Shown one piece after another: positions 3,374 to 9,858 of a DNA stretch of 64,000 nt (its first letter is position 1; every line of letters starts with the position of its first letter). The stretch is taken from the NCBI GenBank assembly GCA_946965045.2, contig OX337236.1, forward strand, positions 1,240,001 to 1,304,000, given 5' to 3'. Under the pieces are notes generated by a model. The model saw nothing but the letters and a program-made list of their open reading frames with translations. It did not search any database and had not been told where the DNA came from. This stretch comes from Epithemia pelagica (taxonomy: Eukaryota; Protista; Bacillariophyta). Made by a program: the position numbers and the translations under genes.

Positions 3374-3718
3374 CGGTCTTGACAAGAGGGGCGGCCTTGC
3401 AAGTTCCCCATTGCAAAAGCTTCGAAGAACAAAAAGCACATGAGCCCAGGGACAATAAGTAAAACAAGGGGATACATTCGTGTTTGCCTCTTGTCCGAGG
3501 AGAAAGTCTGCTGGGGATGCTTATAATGCAGGGAGAAGAGAGAAGACGATAACAAGGCCGACGAGAAAGATGGAAGGGAAAAACATTAGAATTGATGCCG
3601 AGAATGAAAATGGCAGGGAGAAAATACTGTACTAGATGATCTACAAGAATTATTGGACAGACTTTGAGATTCCCCGAAGTGTTGGCAATCACGAATCCAA
3701 CTTTCCTCTTGCACTTGG

Positions 3719-3929
3719 TGTTGAAGGATGTCCCGTCATCGGTCGCGGAGGCGGATGCAACTGCGACCAAGGATACGTCGCCTGGAGCACCAGATGGAGT
3801 CGAATGGATGGAAGCTGAACGACGTGGCAAGCAATCGAAGAAAAAGAGCCAGAGAGCTCATTCTAAGGAGAATACGTAACTTGTAATCGATTGTTGCCTT
3901 TACAGCACAGTTGTTAATAGGTTTCAACA
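3719..3929 (+). repeat. 5' LTR (211 bp)
   Basis: Identical to 9591-9801, with TG...CA termini and a 7-bp terminal inverted repeat. Confidence 0.98.
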
Positions 3930-3943
3930 TATTCTCCTTAGAA
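3930..3943 (+). promoter_or_regulatory. Atypical primer-binding site, self-complementary to LTR 3861-3874
   Basis: TATTCTCCTTAGAA directly abuts the LTR end. It lacks the TGG expected for tRNA-CCA priming and is the exact reverse complement of TTCTAAGGAGAATA at 3861-3874. Confidence 0.75.
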
Positions 3944-3980
3944 AATAATCTCACATTGTGCCGTGAAGTACTGCCGGTCA

Positions 3981-4643
3981 ATGTCTGAGGAACCAAGTCG
4001 CCTCACCACTTTATTGAACCAGTTGACTTTGTTATCGATCGAGCAGCAAGATCGCATCAACGAGACCTACCGCAGGCACGAACATAACGTGCAACAGCGG
4101 GAAGAGGCGTTTCGTGAGGCCCGACGCGAGCTGGAGGACAAGCACAAAAACGATATCGCGCACGACCGGCGCCTCCTCCGAGACGCTAAGGATCGCATTT
4201 ACGCGGAAATCCAAGAGAGGCGGAGGAATTTATTGATTCAAATCCGTTCAACTTCAACTGTGACTGAAGAGCAGGAATTGGTGCCAAAGGTACCTAGGAC
4301 CGTACAACAACGCACCTCGGAGGCAGAATTGGATTCATCTCGGGACGAATCGGCTGAGCTAGCGGACGACATCAGGGAACTAGAGGACGGACGCATCGAA
4401 ATCATCGTTGAGATTCCAGATCTCCCCGCAGACGCAACCACCAAACCAAAGAAGCTGGCTATCGGTAGTGACGTGTGGGTATTAAATCCTTTGAAGCTCG
4501 CTCGAGTTCAAAAACGAACACACCTCAAGGCCAAAGTGATTGGAACCACCCCATCCGGACAATACAAGCTCCAGGTGTGGAACCCAATCCTCAAGGTAAA
4601 CGAAGAACATCGACGAATCCGGAAGAATCTGGCCCTCAGATAA
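3981..4643 (+). CDS. Extra retrotransposon ORF (220 aa): coiled coil, acidic linker and predicted SH3/KOW-like beta domain
   Basis: Intact ORF inside the element, upstream of gag. The N-terminus is helical and charged. The C-terminus (LAIGSDVWVLNP...AKVIGTTPSGQYKLQV...HRRIRKNL) has a small beta-barrel pattern. The fold is inferred. Confidence 0.75.
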   Translation: MSEEPSRLTTLLNQLTLLSIEQQDRINETYRRHEHNVQQREEAFREARRELEDKHKNDIAHDRRLLRDAKDRIYAEIQERRRNLLIQIRSTSTVTEEQELVPKVPRTVQQRTSEAELDSSRDESAELADDIRELEDGRIEIIVEIPDLPADATTKPKKLAIGSDVWVLNPLKLARVQKRTHLKAKVIGTTPSGQYKLQVWNPILKVNEEHRRIRKNLALR

Positions 4644-4645
4644 TC

Positions 4646-7600
4646 ATGTCACGCCAAGAACAACCACAACCAGATGGCGCCCCATCCTCAACAGCGAGTG
4701 GCACGGGGAGATATGGACGCAATGGTGGCCGCGGACGCGGTCGAGGTAGAGGAGGACGTGGCTCAGGTGGCCAACAAGGAAATACAAAGTTCCAAGGGCA
4801 GGAACCGACCCTTAAAGACTGTATCTTCGATTATTCAGAAGACCCACAGTCCAAGCGGTATCTTCGGAACGTCGAACACTTGATTGGTTATGTTGGGACA
4901 ACGTTCAAGCGGTACAATCTCCAATTCCAGCAAGCCCTGGAGAATCTTGAGTTACCACCACCTGATGAAGTTGTGCCTCCCAAGGATACGACCAACACCA
5001 TCAAGGTCGAAGAATGGAAGATGAAATACAAGATGAGAGAAGAACAATTGATAGAATATCAAAACTTTCGTGCCTCCCTCTATAGCCTCATCCTGGGTCA
5101 GTGCACCCAGTTGATGAAGGATAAATTGCAGGCCAAAGCAGAGTTCGACGCAGTAAAGAAATCAAGAGATGGAATCGAATTGCTCAAGTTAATCAAACGG
5201 ACCACATTCACCTACGATTCAGGGCGGATTTATGCTCTGGTGGGCCGTGACAAACTCAAGGAAGAATTCTACGGGTTGAAACGAAGACAGAATCAAAGCA
5301 TTCAAAGCTACTACGAGCTTTTTCGTGCGAAAGCCAAGGTAATAGAGGAGCTTGGCATTCTCCTCTATGATGATGACCTTGCACAACAAATTGCAACAGA
5401 CAACAGACACACAACGGGGCCCACCGAAGAAGACAAGGAAGAAGCACAACAGCGTTGCATCGCCATTCGATTCATTCGCTCATGTGGGGCAAGGGAGTAT
5501 GAAACCCATTTACAAAATACGTTTTTGGACGGACCGAACCATTATCCGAAGACCCTCGCCAATGCCCGAGCCATTATTGACAACCGACTGTCAGGCCATC
5601 GCAGTGGGCACGGGCAGCAACCGGTACAAGAAAGTAATGCCACCGGACTGGCTTACCATGCCAGAGAAAGCACCAACAATGGCGACGACGATACATCAAG
5701 TCTGACAGGAGCCACATTGAACACAACAGGACATCAGAGTGGAGCAGCCAACAATGATGGAGCACAGCGCAATCCTCCGAACACAAACGGTACAGTGACG
5801 GTTAACAGACAGCAAACAGAGCTGTCAGCAAATTCTCACCACTTCTCTTTCGCGTCCTCCTGTTTTCAGCCTTGTAACCTATCCAAAGAATGGCTCCTCC
5901 TTGATAACCAATCTACTGTGGATATCATTCACAGTGGACACCTTCTACAAAACATACACACAGCCACTACTCCCATCACCATCACAAGTCATGCCGGGGA
6001 GAGACAACTTACACAACAAGGATTGTTTCCTGGCTATGGGATAGTATGGTATGATCCCGAAGGATCAGCCAACATTCTATCTTTGACCAACGCTCAACAC
6101 CGATTTCGAATTCACTACGACAGCCACGACGGCAACACCTTTCAACTCTTGGACCCTGCTACGGGCAGACTCAAGCACAAGTTTACTCAGAGCCCACAAG
6201 GTCTTTACTACATGCATCTCGACTCCCTACAAGGTAGTAGTTTCGTAACTACGGTTAACGATAACGAAACTCATTACACTGCCAACGAGATCAGTAGGGC
6301 CAAGGGCGTACGTGCATTACAAGCTAAGATAGGGCGCCCTTCCACAAGGGATCTCATCTATATCCTCAACCACAAGCTCATCCCCAACGCTCCTTTCACC
6401 AGCGACGATGCGAGAAGGGCAGAGCTCATCTATGGCCCTGATCTGGGATCGTTAAAAGGAAAAACGACCAGAAGGCGTCCACCAGTTGTGGACACCACAG
6501 AAACAGTACCACCACGCCTCGCGGAAAAACATAAAGACGTCACGATTGCTTTGGATGTGATGCATATCAACAACATCTCCTTTTTGGTTACAACCTCACG
6601 CGTGTTTCGGTTTTCCACCATGGATGCCATCAAGGATAAAGAAGAGGACACGCTGATTCGATCGATCAGAAAGACATTGTCCGTGTTTCGTCGTGGCGGT
6701 CTGCGACCCAGGTTTATTATGGCCGATGGAGCGTTTGCAAGTGACGGAATGGAAATGAGTATGGGAAACTTAGGAGTGAAATTAAACACCACGGCCCGCG
6801 ATGAACATGTGGGTCTGATCGAACGGCACATACGAACTGTGAAGGAACGAATCAGGAGTGTTTATGCAACTTTGCCGTTCCCGACTCTGCCAAAGATTAT
6901 GCTGATCGAACTGGCTAAATTTGCCACCTTCTGGCTCAATAGCCTCCCAACACAGAATCATGAGTTGTCAACTACTATGAGCGCCAGAGAACTTGTCACA
7001 GGCGAAACGCTTGATTTTAATCGGCACTGCCGGTTTGAGTTCGGAGAGTACGTACAATGCCATGAGGAGCATGATAATACCATGGCTCCCCGCACGGTGG
7101 GGGCACTTGCATTACGCCCAACAGGCAATAGGCAAGGAAGTTATTACTTCCTGAGCCCCGAGAGTGGTCGTGTCATTACTCGGAACCATGCCACCAAATT
7201 ACCAATGCCGAAAGAAGTGATCCAGCGGGTAGCACAATTGGCAGCTTCCCAAGAGATGCAGCCTGGTCTTGCTTTCGGAAACCGAGATAACCGAATTCTC
7301 ATGTTAGATGATGATAATCCCCTCCTGGAGGACGATGACAGTGTGTATACGCACGTGGAGGAGGAAGACGACGATCTCCGCTATGATGACGATGTGGTTG
7401 ATCATGAACTGGAAGACGAGCCAGATCCAAACGGTCCACCGATGGAATGGGACCAAAATGGTGTTGAAAACCAGGAAAACCAAGGAGTGAATGATCCAGC
7501 TGGTGGTTTCGACAACGGTGACGGTGAGATGGAACCTGTGGAACAGGGAATCATGGAGGAGCCAATGGAGGGAGAGGCAGGGAATGTGGAGGAATTGATG

Positions 7601-9751
7601 GAAGGGGGGGAACAAGACAATAATGACAATAATGATATTGTTGTGGCCGAAGAAGATATCCAAAACAACAACCTTGAAGAAGTGATTGATATGCCGGACG
7701 ACGAGGAGATGGAGATTGTCTTCGAGCCTGCAAACGACGATGAAGACACAGCAAATGACAACGAGAACCCGAATGAGGGTGACAATAACAATCAACGATA
7801 CAACCTGCGCCCGAATCGTGAGCGCAGTTACGCGCATCGATTTGGTCACACATTCGCATGTGTTGACAGCCTCGAACCGAAACAGCGCTACGATGGATAC
7901 TTGCTCCGCGGAGTGCTATATCTCATTGAGGCAGAGACAAACCTAGCAACCCCACAGATGTCTATGAGGCTAGGGATCAAGATGTTCGGCAACAAAGGAA
8001 GAGAAGCCGTTAAAAAGGAAATAAAACAGCTGCATGACCGAGGGGTTTTACGAGCCGTCCACAAAGCCGACTTATCGTGGGAACAAATTAAGCAAGCACT
8101 GAACTACCTGATGTTTTTAAAACGCAAGAGATGTGGAAAAGTAAAAGGTCGGGGGTGTGCTGACGGGCGTAAACAACGAGGTTTTGTCCCGAAGGAAGAT
8201 GCCGCTTCACCCACCGTTTCGACAGAAGCAGTTTTCATAACGGCAGTTGTGGATGCCGTGGAGCGACGCTATGTTGTCATAGCAGATATCCCAGGCGCGT
8301 TTATGCATTCCGATATGGATCCAAATGTCCATATGCGTATCGAGGGCTTAATGGCAGAATTGCTCTTGGAAGTAGACTACGAAATGTACAGCAAATATGT
8401 GGTCTACGAATACAACAAACCAGTCATCTATGTGGAAATGTTAAAAGCTTTGTACGGCACCCTCAGGGCTGCTCGTCTCTTCTGGATCAAGTTGAGTGGG
8501 GTCCTGCAGAGTTGGGGGTACATCATCAACCCCTACGATCACTGCGTAGCAAACAAGATCATCAACGGAAAGCAATGCACCGTAACCTGGCACATTGATG
8601 ATTTGAAAATCTCACATGAGGACCCGGCGGTTGTTGAGTCGTTCTTAACCGATCTACAGGCTGAGTTCGGATCTTTGGGAGACATCTCGGTTTCCCGCGG
8701 AAAGCGCCATGATTATCTGGGGATGTTTCTCGATTTCTCAGAGGACGGGATTCTTCAAGTCGACATGCGCCCATACTTACAAACAATCTTTGCTAACATG
8801 CCATCCGAGATGGTTGGCAAAGCCCAAACGCCAGCTGCAAATCACCTGTATCATGTGAACAATGAAGCAACAAAACTCAATGAGCAGGATGCGGAGCGTT
8901 TTCACAGTATCACGATGCAGTTAGCGTACCTAGCACACCGCGGTCGGCCCGATATTCGAACTGCTGTCGCCTTCCTGTCCACCCGAGTGGCCCAACCTGA
9001 TGAAGACGATTATCGGAAGTTGTCACGAGTGTTGAAATATTTGCAAACCACCGTGGATCTGGTTCTTCGCTTACAAGGTGCAGCTGAGTGGATCATAAGA
9101 TGGTGGGTAGATGCATCATATGCGGTACACCCCAACACCAAAGGACATACGGGTGGATTCATGAGCCTTGGCAAAGGAACAGTGATCGGCTTTTCAGCCA
9201 AACAAAAGTTAGTTGCAAGAAGTTCCACCGAATGCGAGTTAATTGGCATTCACGACGTGATGCCATCACTCATCTGGAGTAAGAAGTTTATGGAGGCCCA
9301 AGGATTGAATGTGCAGGATGTTATACTGCATCAAGATAATCAGAGCAGCATCCTCTTAGCCAAGAACGGTCGACTGTCCAGCTCCAAACGAACGAAGCAC
9401 ATTGATGTTCGCTATTTCTTTGTGACAGACCGCATCAAGAACAAAGAGTTGAGTGTGGAGTTCTGTCCTACAGAACAAATGATAGCGGATTTCTTTACGA
9501 AACCGCTTCAGGGTCGCCTCTTTTACCAACTACGGGACCTGATCATGAATATTGCTCCTCACGATAAACATCATTCGTCCCATAGGAGTGTGTTGAAGGA
9601 TGTCCCGTCATCGGTCGCGGAGGCGGATGCAACTGCGACCAAGGATACGTCGCCTGGAGCACCAGATGGAGTCGAATGGATGGAAGCTGAACGACGTGGC
9701 AAGCAATCGAAGAAAAAGAGCCAGAGAGCTCATTCTAAGGAGAATACGTAA
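4646..9751 (+). CDS. Gag-Pol polyprotein, single uninterrupted ORF
   Basis: Protease WLLLDNQST. Integrase core ALDVMH...MADG...IERHIRTVKER. RT KVKGRGCADGRKQR and WHIDDLKISH. RNase H WVDASYA, SSTECE, QDNQS, TKHIDVRYFFVTD, ADFFTKPLQG. First ATG is at 4646. Confidence 0.97.
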   Translation: MSRQEQPQPDGAPSSTASGTGRYGRNGGRGRGRGRGGRGSGGQQGNTKFQGQEPTLKDCIFDYSEDPQSKRYLRNVEHLIGYVGTTFKRYNLQFQQALENLELPPPDEVVPPKDTTNTIKVEEWKMKYKMREEQLIEYQNFRASLYSLILGQCTQLMKDKLQAKAEFDAVKKSRDGIELLKLIKRTTFTYDSGRIYALVGRDKLKEEFYGLKRRQNQSIQSYYELFRAKAKVIEELGILLYDDDLAQQIATDNRHTTGPTEEDKEEAQQRCIAIRFIRSCGAREYETHLQNTFLDGPNHYPKTLANARAIIDNRLSGHRSGHGQQPVQESNATGLAYHARESTNNGDDDTSSLTGATLNTTGHQSGAANNDGAQRNPPNTNGTVTVNRQQTELSANSHHFSFASSCFQPCNLSKEWLLLDNQSTVDIIHSGHLLQNIHTATTPITITSHAGERQLTQQGLFPGYGIVWYDPEGSANILSLTNAQHRFRIHYDSHDGNTFQLLDPATGRLKHKFTQSPQGLYYMHLDSLQGSSFVTTVNDNETHYTANEISRAKGVRALQAKIGRPSTRDLIYILNHKLIPNAPFTSDDARRAELIYGPDLGSLKGKTTRRRPPVVDTTETVPPRLAEKHKDVTIALDVMHINNISFLVTTSRVFRFSTMDAIKDKEEDTLIRSIRKTLSVFRRGGLRPRFIMADGAFASDGMEMSMGNLGVKLNTTARDEHVGLIERHIRTVKERIRSVYATLPFPTLPKIMLIELAKFATFWLNSLPTQNHELSTTMSARELVTGETLDFNRHCRFEFGEYVQCHEEHDNTMAPRTVGALALRPTGNRQGSYYFLSPESGRVITRNHATKLPMPKEVIQRVAQLAASQEMQPGLAFGNRDNRILMLDDDNPLLEDDDSVYTHVEEEDDDLRYDDDVVDHELEDEPDPNGPPMEWDQNGVENQENQGVNDPAGGFDNGDGEMEPVEQGIMEEPMEGEAGNVEELMEGGEQDNNDNNDIVVAEEDIQNNNLEEVIDMPDDEEMEIVFEPANDDEDTANDNENPNEGDNNNQRYNLRPNRERSYAHRFGHTFACVDSLEPKQRYDGYLLRGVLYLIEAETNLATPQMSMRLGIKMFGNKGREAVKKEIKQLHDRGVLRAVHKADLSWEQIKQALNYLMFLKRKRCGKVKGRGCADGRKQRGFVPKEDAASPTVSTEAVFITAVVDAVERRYVVIADIPGAFMHSDMDPNVHMRIEGLMAELLLEVDYEMYSKYVVYEYNKPVIYVEMLKALYGTLRAARLFWIKLSGVLQSWGYIINPYDHCVANKIINGKQCTVTWHIDDLKISHEDPAVVESFLTDLQAEFGSLGDISVSRGKRHDYLGMFLDFSEDGILQVDMRPYLQTIFANMPSEMVGKAQTPAANHLYHVNNEATKLNEQDAERFHSITMQLAYLAHRGRPDIRTAVAFLSTRVAQPDEDDYRKLSRVLKYLQTTVDLVLRLQGAAEWIIRWWVDASYAVHPNTKGHTGGFMSLGKGTVIGFSAKQKLVARSSTECELIGIHDVMPSLIWSKKFMEAQGLNVQDVILHQDNQSSILLAKNGRLSSSKRTKHIDVRYFFVTDRIKNKELSVEFCPTEQMIADFFTKPLQGRLFYQLRDLIMNIAPHDKHHSSHRSVLKDVPSSVAEADATATKDTSPGAPDGVEWMEAERRGKQSKKKSQRAHSKENT
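9581..9590 (+). promoter_or_regulatory. Short candidate polypurine tract
   Basis: CATAGGAGTG lies directly before the 3' LTR and overlaps the HRSV codons. The purine run is only AGGAG, so support is positional. Confidence 0.5.
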
Positions 9752-9801
9752 CTTGTAATCGATTGTTGCCTTTACAGCACAGTTGTTAATAGGTTTCAAC
9801 A
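9591..9801 (+). repeat. 3' LTR (211 bp)
   Basis: Identical to the 5' LTR and followed by the TSD CTTGG. Confidence 0.98.
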
Positions 9802-9858
9802 CTTGGGCCGATGCCCGAGACTCAAGATTTGCGCCACAACATGAATCGGTAGTACTGT

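Follow-up and report, generated by a model that had tools for sequence, protein, structure and literature searches.

How does an LTR retrotransposon begin reverse transcription when no tRNA-type primer site follows its 5′ LTR? This question is raised by an element on contig C9 of a 60.5-Mb, 23-contig genome. The window (the whole 64,000-nt stretch that was analyzed, C9:1240001-1304000) carries the element on its forward strand, bounded by two 211-nt LTRs with TG...CA ends at 3719-3929 and 9591-9801, which proved 100% identical when the repeats were compared. The repeat finder returned a 212-nt repeat, which consists of the 211-nt LTR and one chance flanking G. The LTR borders were set by the 211-nt identity and by a 5-bp target-site duplication, CTTGG, whose two copies directly flank the 5′ LTR (3714-3718) and the 3′ LTR (9802-9806). 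A genome search revealed six loci with at least 95% identity to the 5′ LTR-leader, and for five of these it was at least 98.5%. With its identical LTRs and its near-identical loci elsewhere in the genome, this copy is young and structurally intact. Directly 5′ of the 3′ LTR lies a polypurine-tract-like sequence, ATAGGAGTG (9582-9590, forward strand), and (A/G)AAGGAGTG was found at this place in almost all related families read in the same genome.

The coding capacity of the element identifies its class. The gag-pol polyprotein ORF (4646-9751, forward strand, first ATG to the stop codon at 9749-9751) enters the 3′ LTR by 161 nt and has more than 1000 homologues at E <= 1e-20. The named relatives of the polyprotein come from the diatoms Mayamaea pseudoterrestris and Nitzschia sp. 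Nitz4, and the element is of a diatom-type lineage. A Copia-type reverse transcriptase (Pfam RVT_2, PF07727) was recognized at 8129-8791 (E 5e-10; 39.7 bits against a cut-off of 31.6), and it is the sole Pfam domain recognized in the element's ORFs. An approximate RNase H region at 9092-9484 was delimited by eye from the motifs WWVDASYA, ECELIG and KHIDVRYFF in the translation. Upstream of these, the region at 6278-7345 had no sequence match in Pfam, NCBIfam or the PDB, even when a 23-sequence profile was run against the PDB, and an HHCC pattern was looked for in its translation and not found. Nevertheless, an AlphaFold2 model of this region (23 homologues, pLDDT 78.4) resembles retroviral integrases in the PDB (Foldseek E about 3e-9, probability 1.00), and we assign it to integrase, recognized only by its predicted fold. 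An integrase located 5′ of an RVT_2 reverse transcriptase gives the Copia domain order, and on the strength of this reverse transcriptase and the upstream integrase fold, the element is a Ty1/copia-type LTR retrotransposon. All of these coding features lie on the forward strand, as does an upstream ORF of 220 aa (3981-4643) located between the predicted primer site and gag-pol. A Pfam search with the upstream ORF gave no match; its TAA stop is followed by TC and then by the gag-pol ATG at 4646. A relative at 39% RT-RNase H identity (L063) has a like-placed ORF at about 150-460 whose N-terminus looks similar by eye, and the 220-aa ORF may be a conserved extra gene of the clade. At the other end of the coding region, the pol ORF continues through the U3 of the 3′ LTR (9591-9751; also in L031-L049), and the LTR-encoded C-terminal tail of pol has a recurrent EW..V.RR-like motif.

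A candidate answer to the question of priming lies at the border of the 5′ LTR. Reading 3861-3874 (TTCTAAGGAGAATA) against 3930-3943 (TATTCTCCTTAGAA) showed that the two segments are exact reverse complements over 14 of 14 nt, with pairs running from 3874-3930 to 3861-3943. Pairing stops beyond these 14 bp on both sides, where 3860 (A) faces 3944 (A) and 3875 (C) faces 3929 (A). Since the LTR borders are fixed by the identical repeats and the target duplication, the second 14-mer adjoins the terminal CA of the LTR without a gap. A TGG-type site was looked for after the 5′ LTR and none follows. The probability that such a match arises by chance in one element is approximately 7e-7 (about 198 start positions in the LTR divided by 4^14). 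A first-pass annotation of this DNA had described a gapless 14-nt perfect complementarity at the LTR CA, the lack of a TGG-type primer-binding site and a chance probability below one in a million, and all three statements were borne out. Within the window, the 14-mer was found at the three expected sites only, even with up to 2 mismatches allowed (0.29 expected from shuffles), a second copy of the LTR block being located at 9733-9746 in the 3′ LTR. When the RNA of 3860-3950 was folded, the two arms were paired in a structure of -32.1 kcal/mol (z = -7.47 against dinucleotide shuffles).

One possibility to be weighed is that a tRNA, half-tRNA or other RNA of the host is the partner of 3930-3943 and that the match to the LTR is secondary. 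Half-tRNA priming is a known alternative among Copia elements, as in Osser, Bryco and Bianca (PMC6317226). In the 60.5-Mb genome, 51 exact occurrences of the 14-mer were counted and, by coordinates, all of them are LTR or adjacent-site positions, which confines the 14-mer to these elements. Singletons with one mismatch numbered 9, at or below the roughly estimated chance expectation of about 19, and a genome scan with up to 2 mismatches gave no more matches than a reversed-pattern control. A comparison of the site with host tRNAs had been proposed in the first-pass annotation. As far as this could be judged by place only, the 63 scored of 1840 candidate tRNA genes included none at a place that matches the 14-mer with 0-1 mismatches. 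Likewise, neither the window nor the 390 kb of retrieved loci contained a tRNA gene, an Rfam search of 3600-4100 matched no family, and no other conserved candidate site, whether TGG-type or tRNA-like, was found after the LTR.

Related elements in the same genome were then the main source of evidence on the pairing itself. A DNA search with the LTR-leader and a protein search with the reverse transcriptase yielded a graded series of relatives at 100, 86, 83, 74, 72, 65, 56 and 45% RT identity. In the closest families, whose LTRs are 73-80% identical, both arms are unchanged, and a host primer would also be compatible with this observation taken by itself. Families at 65-86% RT identity have differing arms, each of which is a 14-nt perfect match to its own LTR. 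The arms were read at loci L031-L050, and seven arm sequences were obtained in full (TTCTAAGGAGAATA, TTCAATGGAGTTTA, TTCAATGGAGAATA, TTCTATTGGAAATA, TTCTAAGGAGATTA, TTCGATGAGTAAAA and TTCTTTTTAAAATA); two further variants were seen in part in a genome-wide pattern scan. An alignment of 11 own-genome family representatives (A1) contained standard pairs in 154 of 154 cells of the 14-pair helix. Ten of the 14 pairs are changed on both sides and none is changed on one side only, which is the kind of pairing-keeping change that the first-pass annotation had suggested looking for in related copies. None of 500 shuffles reached the observed pairing by any of five measures, and pairing fell to 38-55% (at most 54.5%) when the register was slid by 1-3 columns. 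The first three paired bases (TTC) are invariant among the own-genome families, and no G-U intermediates were seen among the 11 families of A1.

The same arrangement was found outside this genome. Ten intact elements at 39-62% identity (RT-RNase H down to 39%), located on contigs of other assemblies, on metagenome scaffolds and on Logan contigs (L051, L052, L055, L057-L061, L063 and L064), have 13-15-nt arms of unrelated sequence at the same place. In every intact foreign contig that includes a 5′ end, the longest exact inverted match before gag is the pair formed by the LTR block and the site; L062 was left out of the pairing test as it lacks a 5′ end. The LTR block directly follows TCA in L051 (CTTCTTGAATAAGA), L052-54 (CTCTATTCGATTTA), L055 (TTCCGTAAGTTTTA), L060 (TTCCGTACGCTTTTA, with one G-U), L061 (TTCTTTTGAATTAA, 44% RT-RNase H identity) and L063 (TTCTTTTACAATAA). 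It follows CTC in L058 (AGACTTTTAGATTTA, 15 nt), GCA in L059 (GTTTTAACTTTAGA) and TTC in L064 (ACTTTTAATTTAAA, 40% RT-RNase H identity), and it reads AGACTTTTAAAATTA (15 nt) in L057. An environmental set of 80 loci (382 kb) from JGI and ENA metagenome contigs was also searched for non-simple inverted repeats of at least 13 nt spaced 20-400 nt apart. Of the 40 repeats counted, 26 lie in the exact context in which the block follows C or CA and the site follows CA or CAAC, and another 6 or more are recognizable variants of this context, giving about 32 elements in all. On the opposite strand, used as a control, the context rule was met by 0 of 40. Most elements share a common context, with (C)TCA before the block in the LTR and CA before the site after the LTR, and in almost every family read the helix ends at the terminal CA of the LTR or at most 1 base away from it. 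Altogether, about 50 related element families keep the pairing with differing sequences, and the pairing, its covariation and its fixed place at the LTR border are present across a large clade.

These data bear directly on the two simplest objections. No one host RNA, be it a tRNA, a half-tRNA or another kind, can account for about 50 different sites, each of which mirrors its own LTR and always varies in step with it. Together with the genome-wide counts given above, this makes a host primer an extremely improbable explanation. A chance inverted repeat or an assembly artefact would have the AT-rich composition of the arms in its favor and nothing else. Beyond the low chance probability calculated for one element, the pairing recurs in independent assemblies, in metagenomes and in many families, and this recurrence excludes both chance and artefact. 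Loss of complementarity in relatives, which the first-pass annotation had named as an outcome that would speak against its reading, was not seen among the intact relatives read. A Mayamaea copy (L056) that retains the LTR block and the first 7 nt of the site, followed by a deletion, was considered as counter-evidence and rejected, since the deletion within the site marks it as a decayed copy. As a separate observation, an older family represented by L071 (about 290-420) and L085 (about 1570-1700), with LTRs 92.9% identical, has 12 Watson-Crick and 2 G-U pairs; two of its LTR-block positions are T where the site predicts C.

Based on these observations, we propose that the element primes its reverse transcription with a piece cut from its own RNA, without a host tRNA, and we assign this reading a probability of roughly 0.85. 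Self-priming of this Copia element had already been put forward in the first-pass annotation, and it is now supported by covariation in the 11 own-genome families, in ten foreign contigs and in about 32 environmental elements. In the proposed sequence of events, transcription would begin in the 5′ LTR at the initiator-like junction of TCA and TTC, at 3860 or 3861. The first 14 nt of the RNA (3861-3874, the predicted self-primer block and start of R) would fold over the remaining ~55 nt of R and U5 (3875-3929) and pair with the predicted primer-binding site at 3930-3943. The RNase H of the element would then cut the RNA about 14-15 nt from its start, at the inner duplex end, and synthesis from the freed 3′-OH through U5 and R would produce minus-strand strong-stop DNA, with the terminal A of the LTR as the first templated base. 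After such a cut, strand transfer would need an R that reaches beyond nt 15. During plus-strand synthesis the retained primer would be copied, and the site after the LTR would in this way be rewritten to match the primer in each cycle. The transcription start, the RNase H cut, pairing in cis as opposed to trans, the position of the R/U5 border and the rewriting of the site are the parts of this scheme that we infer.

Rewriting of the site from the primer in each cycle would explain why the arms are strictly Watson-Crick, and the lack of G-U intermediates in A1 fits a templated origin of one arm. This part of the proposal is an analogy that draws on the general behavior of retroviral primer sites. 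It draws as well on a statement about Tf1, whose self-primer is not removed according to the title of a study cited in PMC6317226.

Covariation demonstrates pairing, not priming, and a helix of this kind could have other uses. A 14-bp helix at the extreme, capped 5′ end of an RNA would affect scanning and could serve packaging, so it is conceivable that the helix is a structural RNA for packaging, dimerization or translation control and that priming occurs otherwise. In LTR elements, the start point of minus-strand synthesis determines where U5 ends. In nearly every family, the helix has its inner end on the LTR border or at most 1 base off; only priming predicts this position, and it favors priming over a helix with a structural role only. 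In addition, there is no alternative TGG-type or conserved tRNA-like site after the LTR that could take over the priming, and the lack of any G-U intermediate in the 11 own-genome families is fitted better by templated copying than by structural selection alone. We therefore regard a purely structural role as very unlikely.

The primer might also come from the element and yet not be made by folding back of the same molecule's 5′ end. A second RNA in the same particle might supply its 5′ end in trans, as might a short 5′ fragment, or else the site might pair with the block's copy in the 3′ R. The predicted RNA carries the block at either end (3861-3874 and 9733-9746), and sequence covariation fits pairing in cis and in trans alike. 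Of the Logan contigs, one stops precisely where the block does and two stop 7 nt past it, positions that are uninterpretable. However, every minimum-energy fold pairs the arms in cis, the arms being 46-104 nt apart in every family read in detail, and a primer from the 3′ R copy would carry the poly(A) tail and need an extra cut. These variants appear unlikely on these grounds.

The model predicts that transcription starts at or next to the primer block. The block directly follows TCA within TCATTCT, and the initiator-like motif as a whole (GCTCATTCT) occupies 3856-3864 on the forward strand. CATTC is invariant across the 11 own-genome families of A1 and the T before it is nearly so; (C)TCA also precedes the block in most foreign elements. 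In oomycetes, the commonest form of the initiator YCAYTYY is TCATTCT, with the start usually at the A (PMC3599244), and for diatoms an Inr-like motif TCAH+1W has been proposed in which +1 is the base after TCA (PMC4686930). By these two motifs, transcription would start at 3860 (A) or 3861 (T), that is, one base before the first paired base or at it. An overlap of the block with the initiator would explain why TTC is invariant at the first paired bases. CTCATTC also lies within the last codons of the pol ORF in the 3′ LTR, and the pol stop is located 3 nt past the primer block in 4 of 7 own-genome families. Because the same bases encode the last pol codons, the conservation of CTCATTC is not proof of an initiator. 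The transcription start near 3861 that the first-pass annotation had suggested is consistent with the motif, which lends it indirect support.

Public sequencing data were consulted as well. A search for public runs that contain the element returned no RNA run, and the four runs that do contain it gave DNA-like contigs of a kind that cannot reveal a transcription start. We also weighed whether the ends of the Logan and JGI contigs (L051-L055) might mark transcript ends and discarded this idea, as the run types are not given and repeats break assemblies. In one of the runs (X4), word depth over 3650-9649 was 52-185 in the LTR against 0-6 in the internal region, which suggests that the sample has many solo LTRs or no full-length copies. 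In the other three runs, the LTR and the internal region were covered about equally.

The region enclosed by the helix, which is the rest of R and U5 at 3875-3929 on the forward strand, has a conserved segment of its own. Most positions of TTGCCTTTACAGCAC (3894-3908, in U5) are invariant or nearly so across the 11 families of A1, with variable flanks; the segment may be a poly(A) region or a protein-binding site. Its CTTTAC.G core recurs in L055. An inner hairpin resembling the U5-IR was predicted in nearly all families folded. In the family of the window its z-score of -1.83 is not significant, and other families range from +0.57 to -3.94. An RNAalifold consensus fold gave no covariation for the inner hairpin.

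Several known systems can be compared with this element. Tf1 and Tf2 of Schizosaccharomyces pombe and the Tf1/sushi group also lack a tRNA site, and their site next to the 5′ LTR complements the first bases of their own transcript, as is predicted here. In Tf1, the duplex is formed by the first 11 nt and the site, and cleavage by RNase H falls between nt 11 and 12 (PMC7175516). The arms enclose R-U5 in both cases, and the model in both is a fold-back duplex that is cut by RNase H (PMC7175516). The duplex of the present element is longer, with 14 nt (13-17 in relatives) against 11 in Tf1. Tf1 also needs the stem-loop enclosed by its duplex, whereas the corresponding hairpin here falls short of statistical support. 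The host in our case is a stramenopile rather than Schizosaccharomyces pombe, and the element is known from sequence alone. Membership in the Tf1/sushi lineage of Ty3/gypsy chromoviruses, which has a gypsy reverse transcriptase and the gypsy order RT-RNase H-IN, was considered and rejected, since the integrase precedes an RVT_2-type reverse transcriptase. Nor does the element resemble the tRNA- or half-tRNA-primed Copia elements, which include copia, Ty5, Osser, Bianca and most others: the site has no TGG start, and it varies with the LTR.

Within the Copia superfamily, there is an earlier sequence-based prediction of self-priming for the TAR lineage of plants, to which Houba and Osr-1 belong (PMC6317226). 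TAR elements resemble the present element both in their superfamily and in the prediction of an LTR-derived site in place of a tRNA site (PMC6317226). They differ in belonging to land plants and in the type of evidence, which here is explicit covariation across about 50 families. Given the prediction for TAR, a self-priming Copia element is not unprecedented. The CoDi elements of diatoms are divergent Ty1/copia-like elements of 5-8 kb, with LTRs of 153-844 bp, TG/CA ends and a gag that lacks CCHC in most groups (PMC2806351). The element studied here is likewise a divergent diatom-type Copia with short TG/CA LTRs, and its relatives occur in Mayamaea and Nitzschia. The text of the CoDi paper (PMC2806351) contains 0 mentions of 'primer binding', 'tRNA' or 'priming'. 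The fungal GalEa elements are Copia elements that also have no tRNA-type site and have an unusual conserved sequence in its place; for them a 'conserved hairpin site' with no complementary LTR sequence was reported, and the Tf1 model was rejected by the authors (PMC5445492). In contrast to GalEa, for which no LTR partner was reported, the partner in the present element is explicit and covaries with the site. We found no description of self-priming in diatom Copia elements in the literature, and the start of reverse transcription in these elements appears undescribed so far. In view of the earlier TAR prediction, the novelty was overstated in the first-pass annotation.

A wider reading of these results concerns the whole clade. 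We tentatively suggest, at slightly less than an even chance, that tRNA-independent self-priming is the ancestral and general mode of a very large, mostly diatom Copia clade, having arisen apart from both Tf1/sushi and TAR. One 14-nt segment would then serve as the downstream half of the core-promoter initiator, as the primer and, in the 3′ LTR of many families, as the last codons of pol, and the site would be rewritten in each cycle. If true, this would offer a natural system for the co-evolution of a primer and its site. It would also mean that a dominant class of diatom transposons escapes dependence on host tRNA, and possibly control based on tRNA fragments. Among the LTR retrotransposons of diatoms, those of Copia type predominate, and a link between them and stress-induced genome change has been drawn (PMC2806351). 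With a self-encoded primer throughout the clade, mobility would be independent of host tRNA, and pipelines that find or classify LTR elements by their tRNA sites will give them wrong scores. There are now three distant settings in which self-priming has been found or predicted, namely fungal and vertebrate gypsy elements, plant Copia elements and stramenopile Copia elements. According to an old proposal, tRNA priming in LTR elements came after hairpin or self-priming (PMC3601003), and the spread over three settings bears on it. Furthermore, the approximately 50 natural arm variants are a ready-made mutational series from which the rules of pairing can be read. In the own-genome families these rules are a length of 14 nt, a fixed TTC start and strict Watson-Crick pairs.

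Two further observations were made in the course of the genome-wide searches. An unrelated, near-identical repeat that begins with TCATTCCAGCGACTTCC is present in four copies, at C2:2728890, C10:3265517, C11:1920176 and C17:2715517. This repeat came up as a chance match to the architecture pattern, and its arms are not complementary. Finally, contigs C14, C15, C21, C22 and C23 carry dense clusters of high-scoring tRNA genes, some of which are duplicated between contigs and with C13:405-419 kb. These small, tRNA-dense contigs are probably organelle genomes together with a nuclear insert of organelle DNA, or else assembly duplicates.
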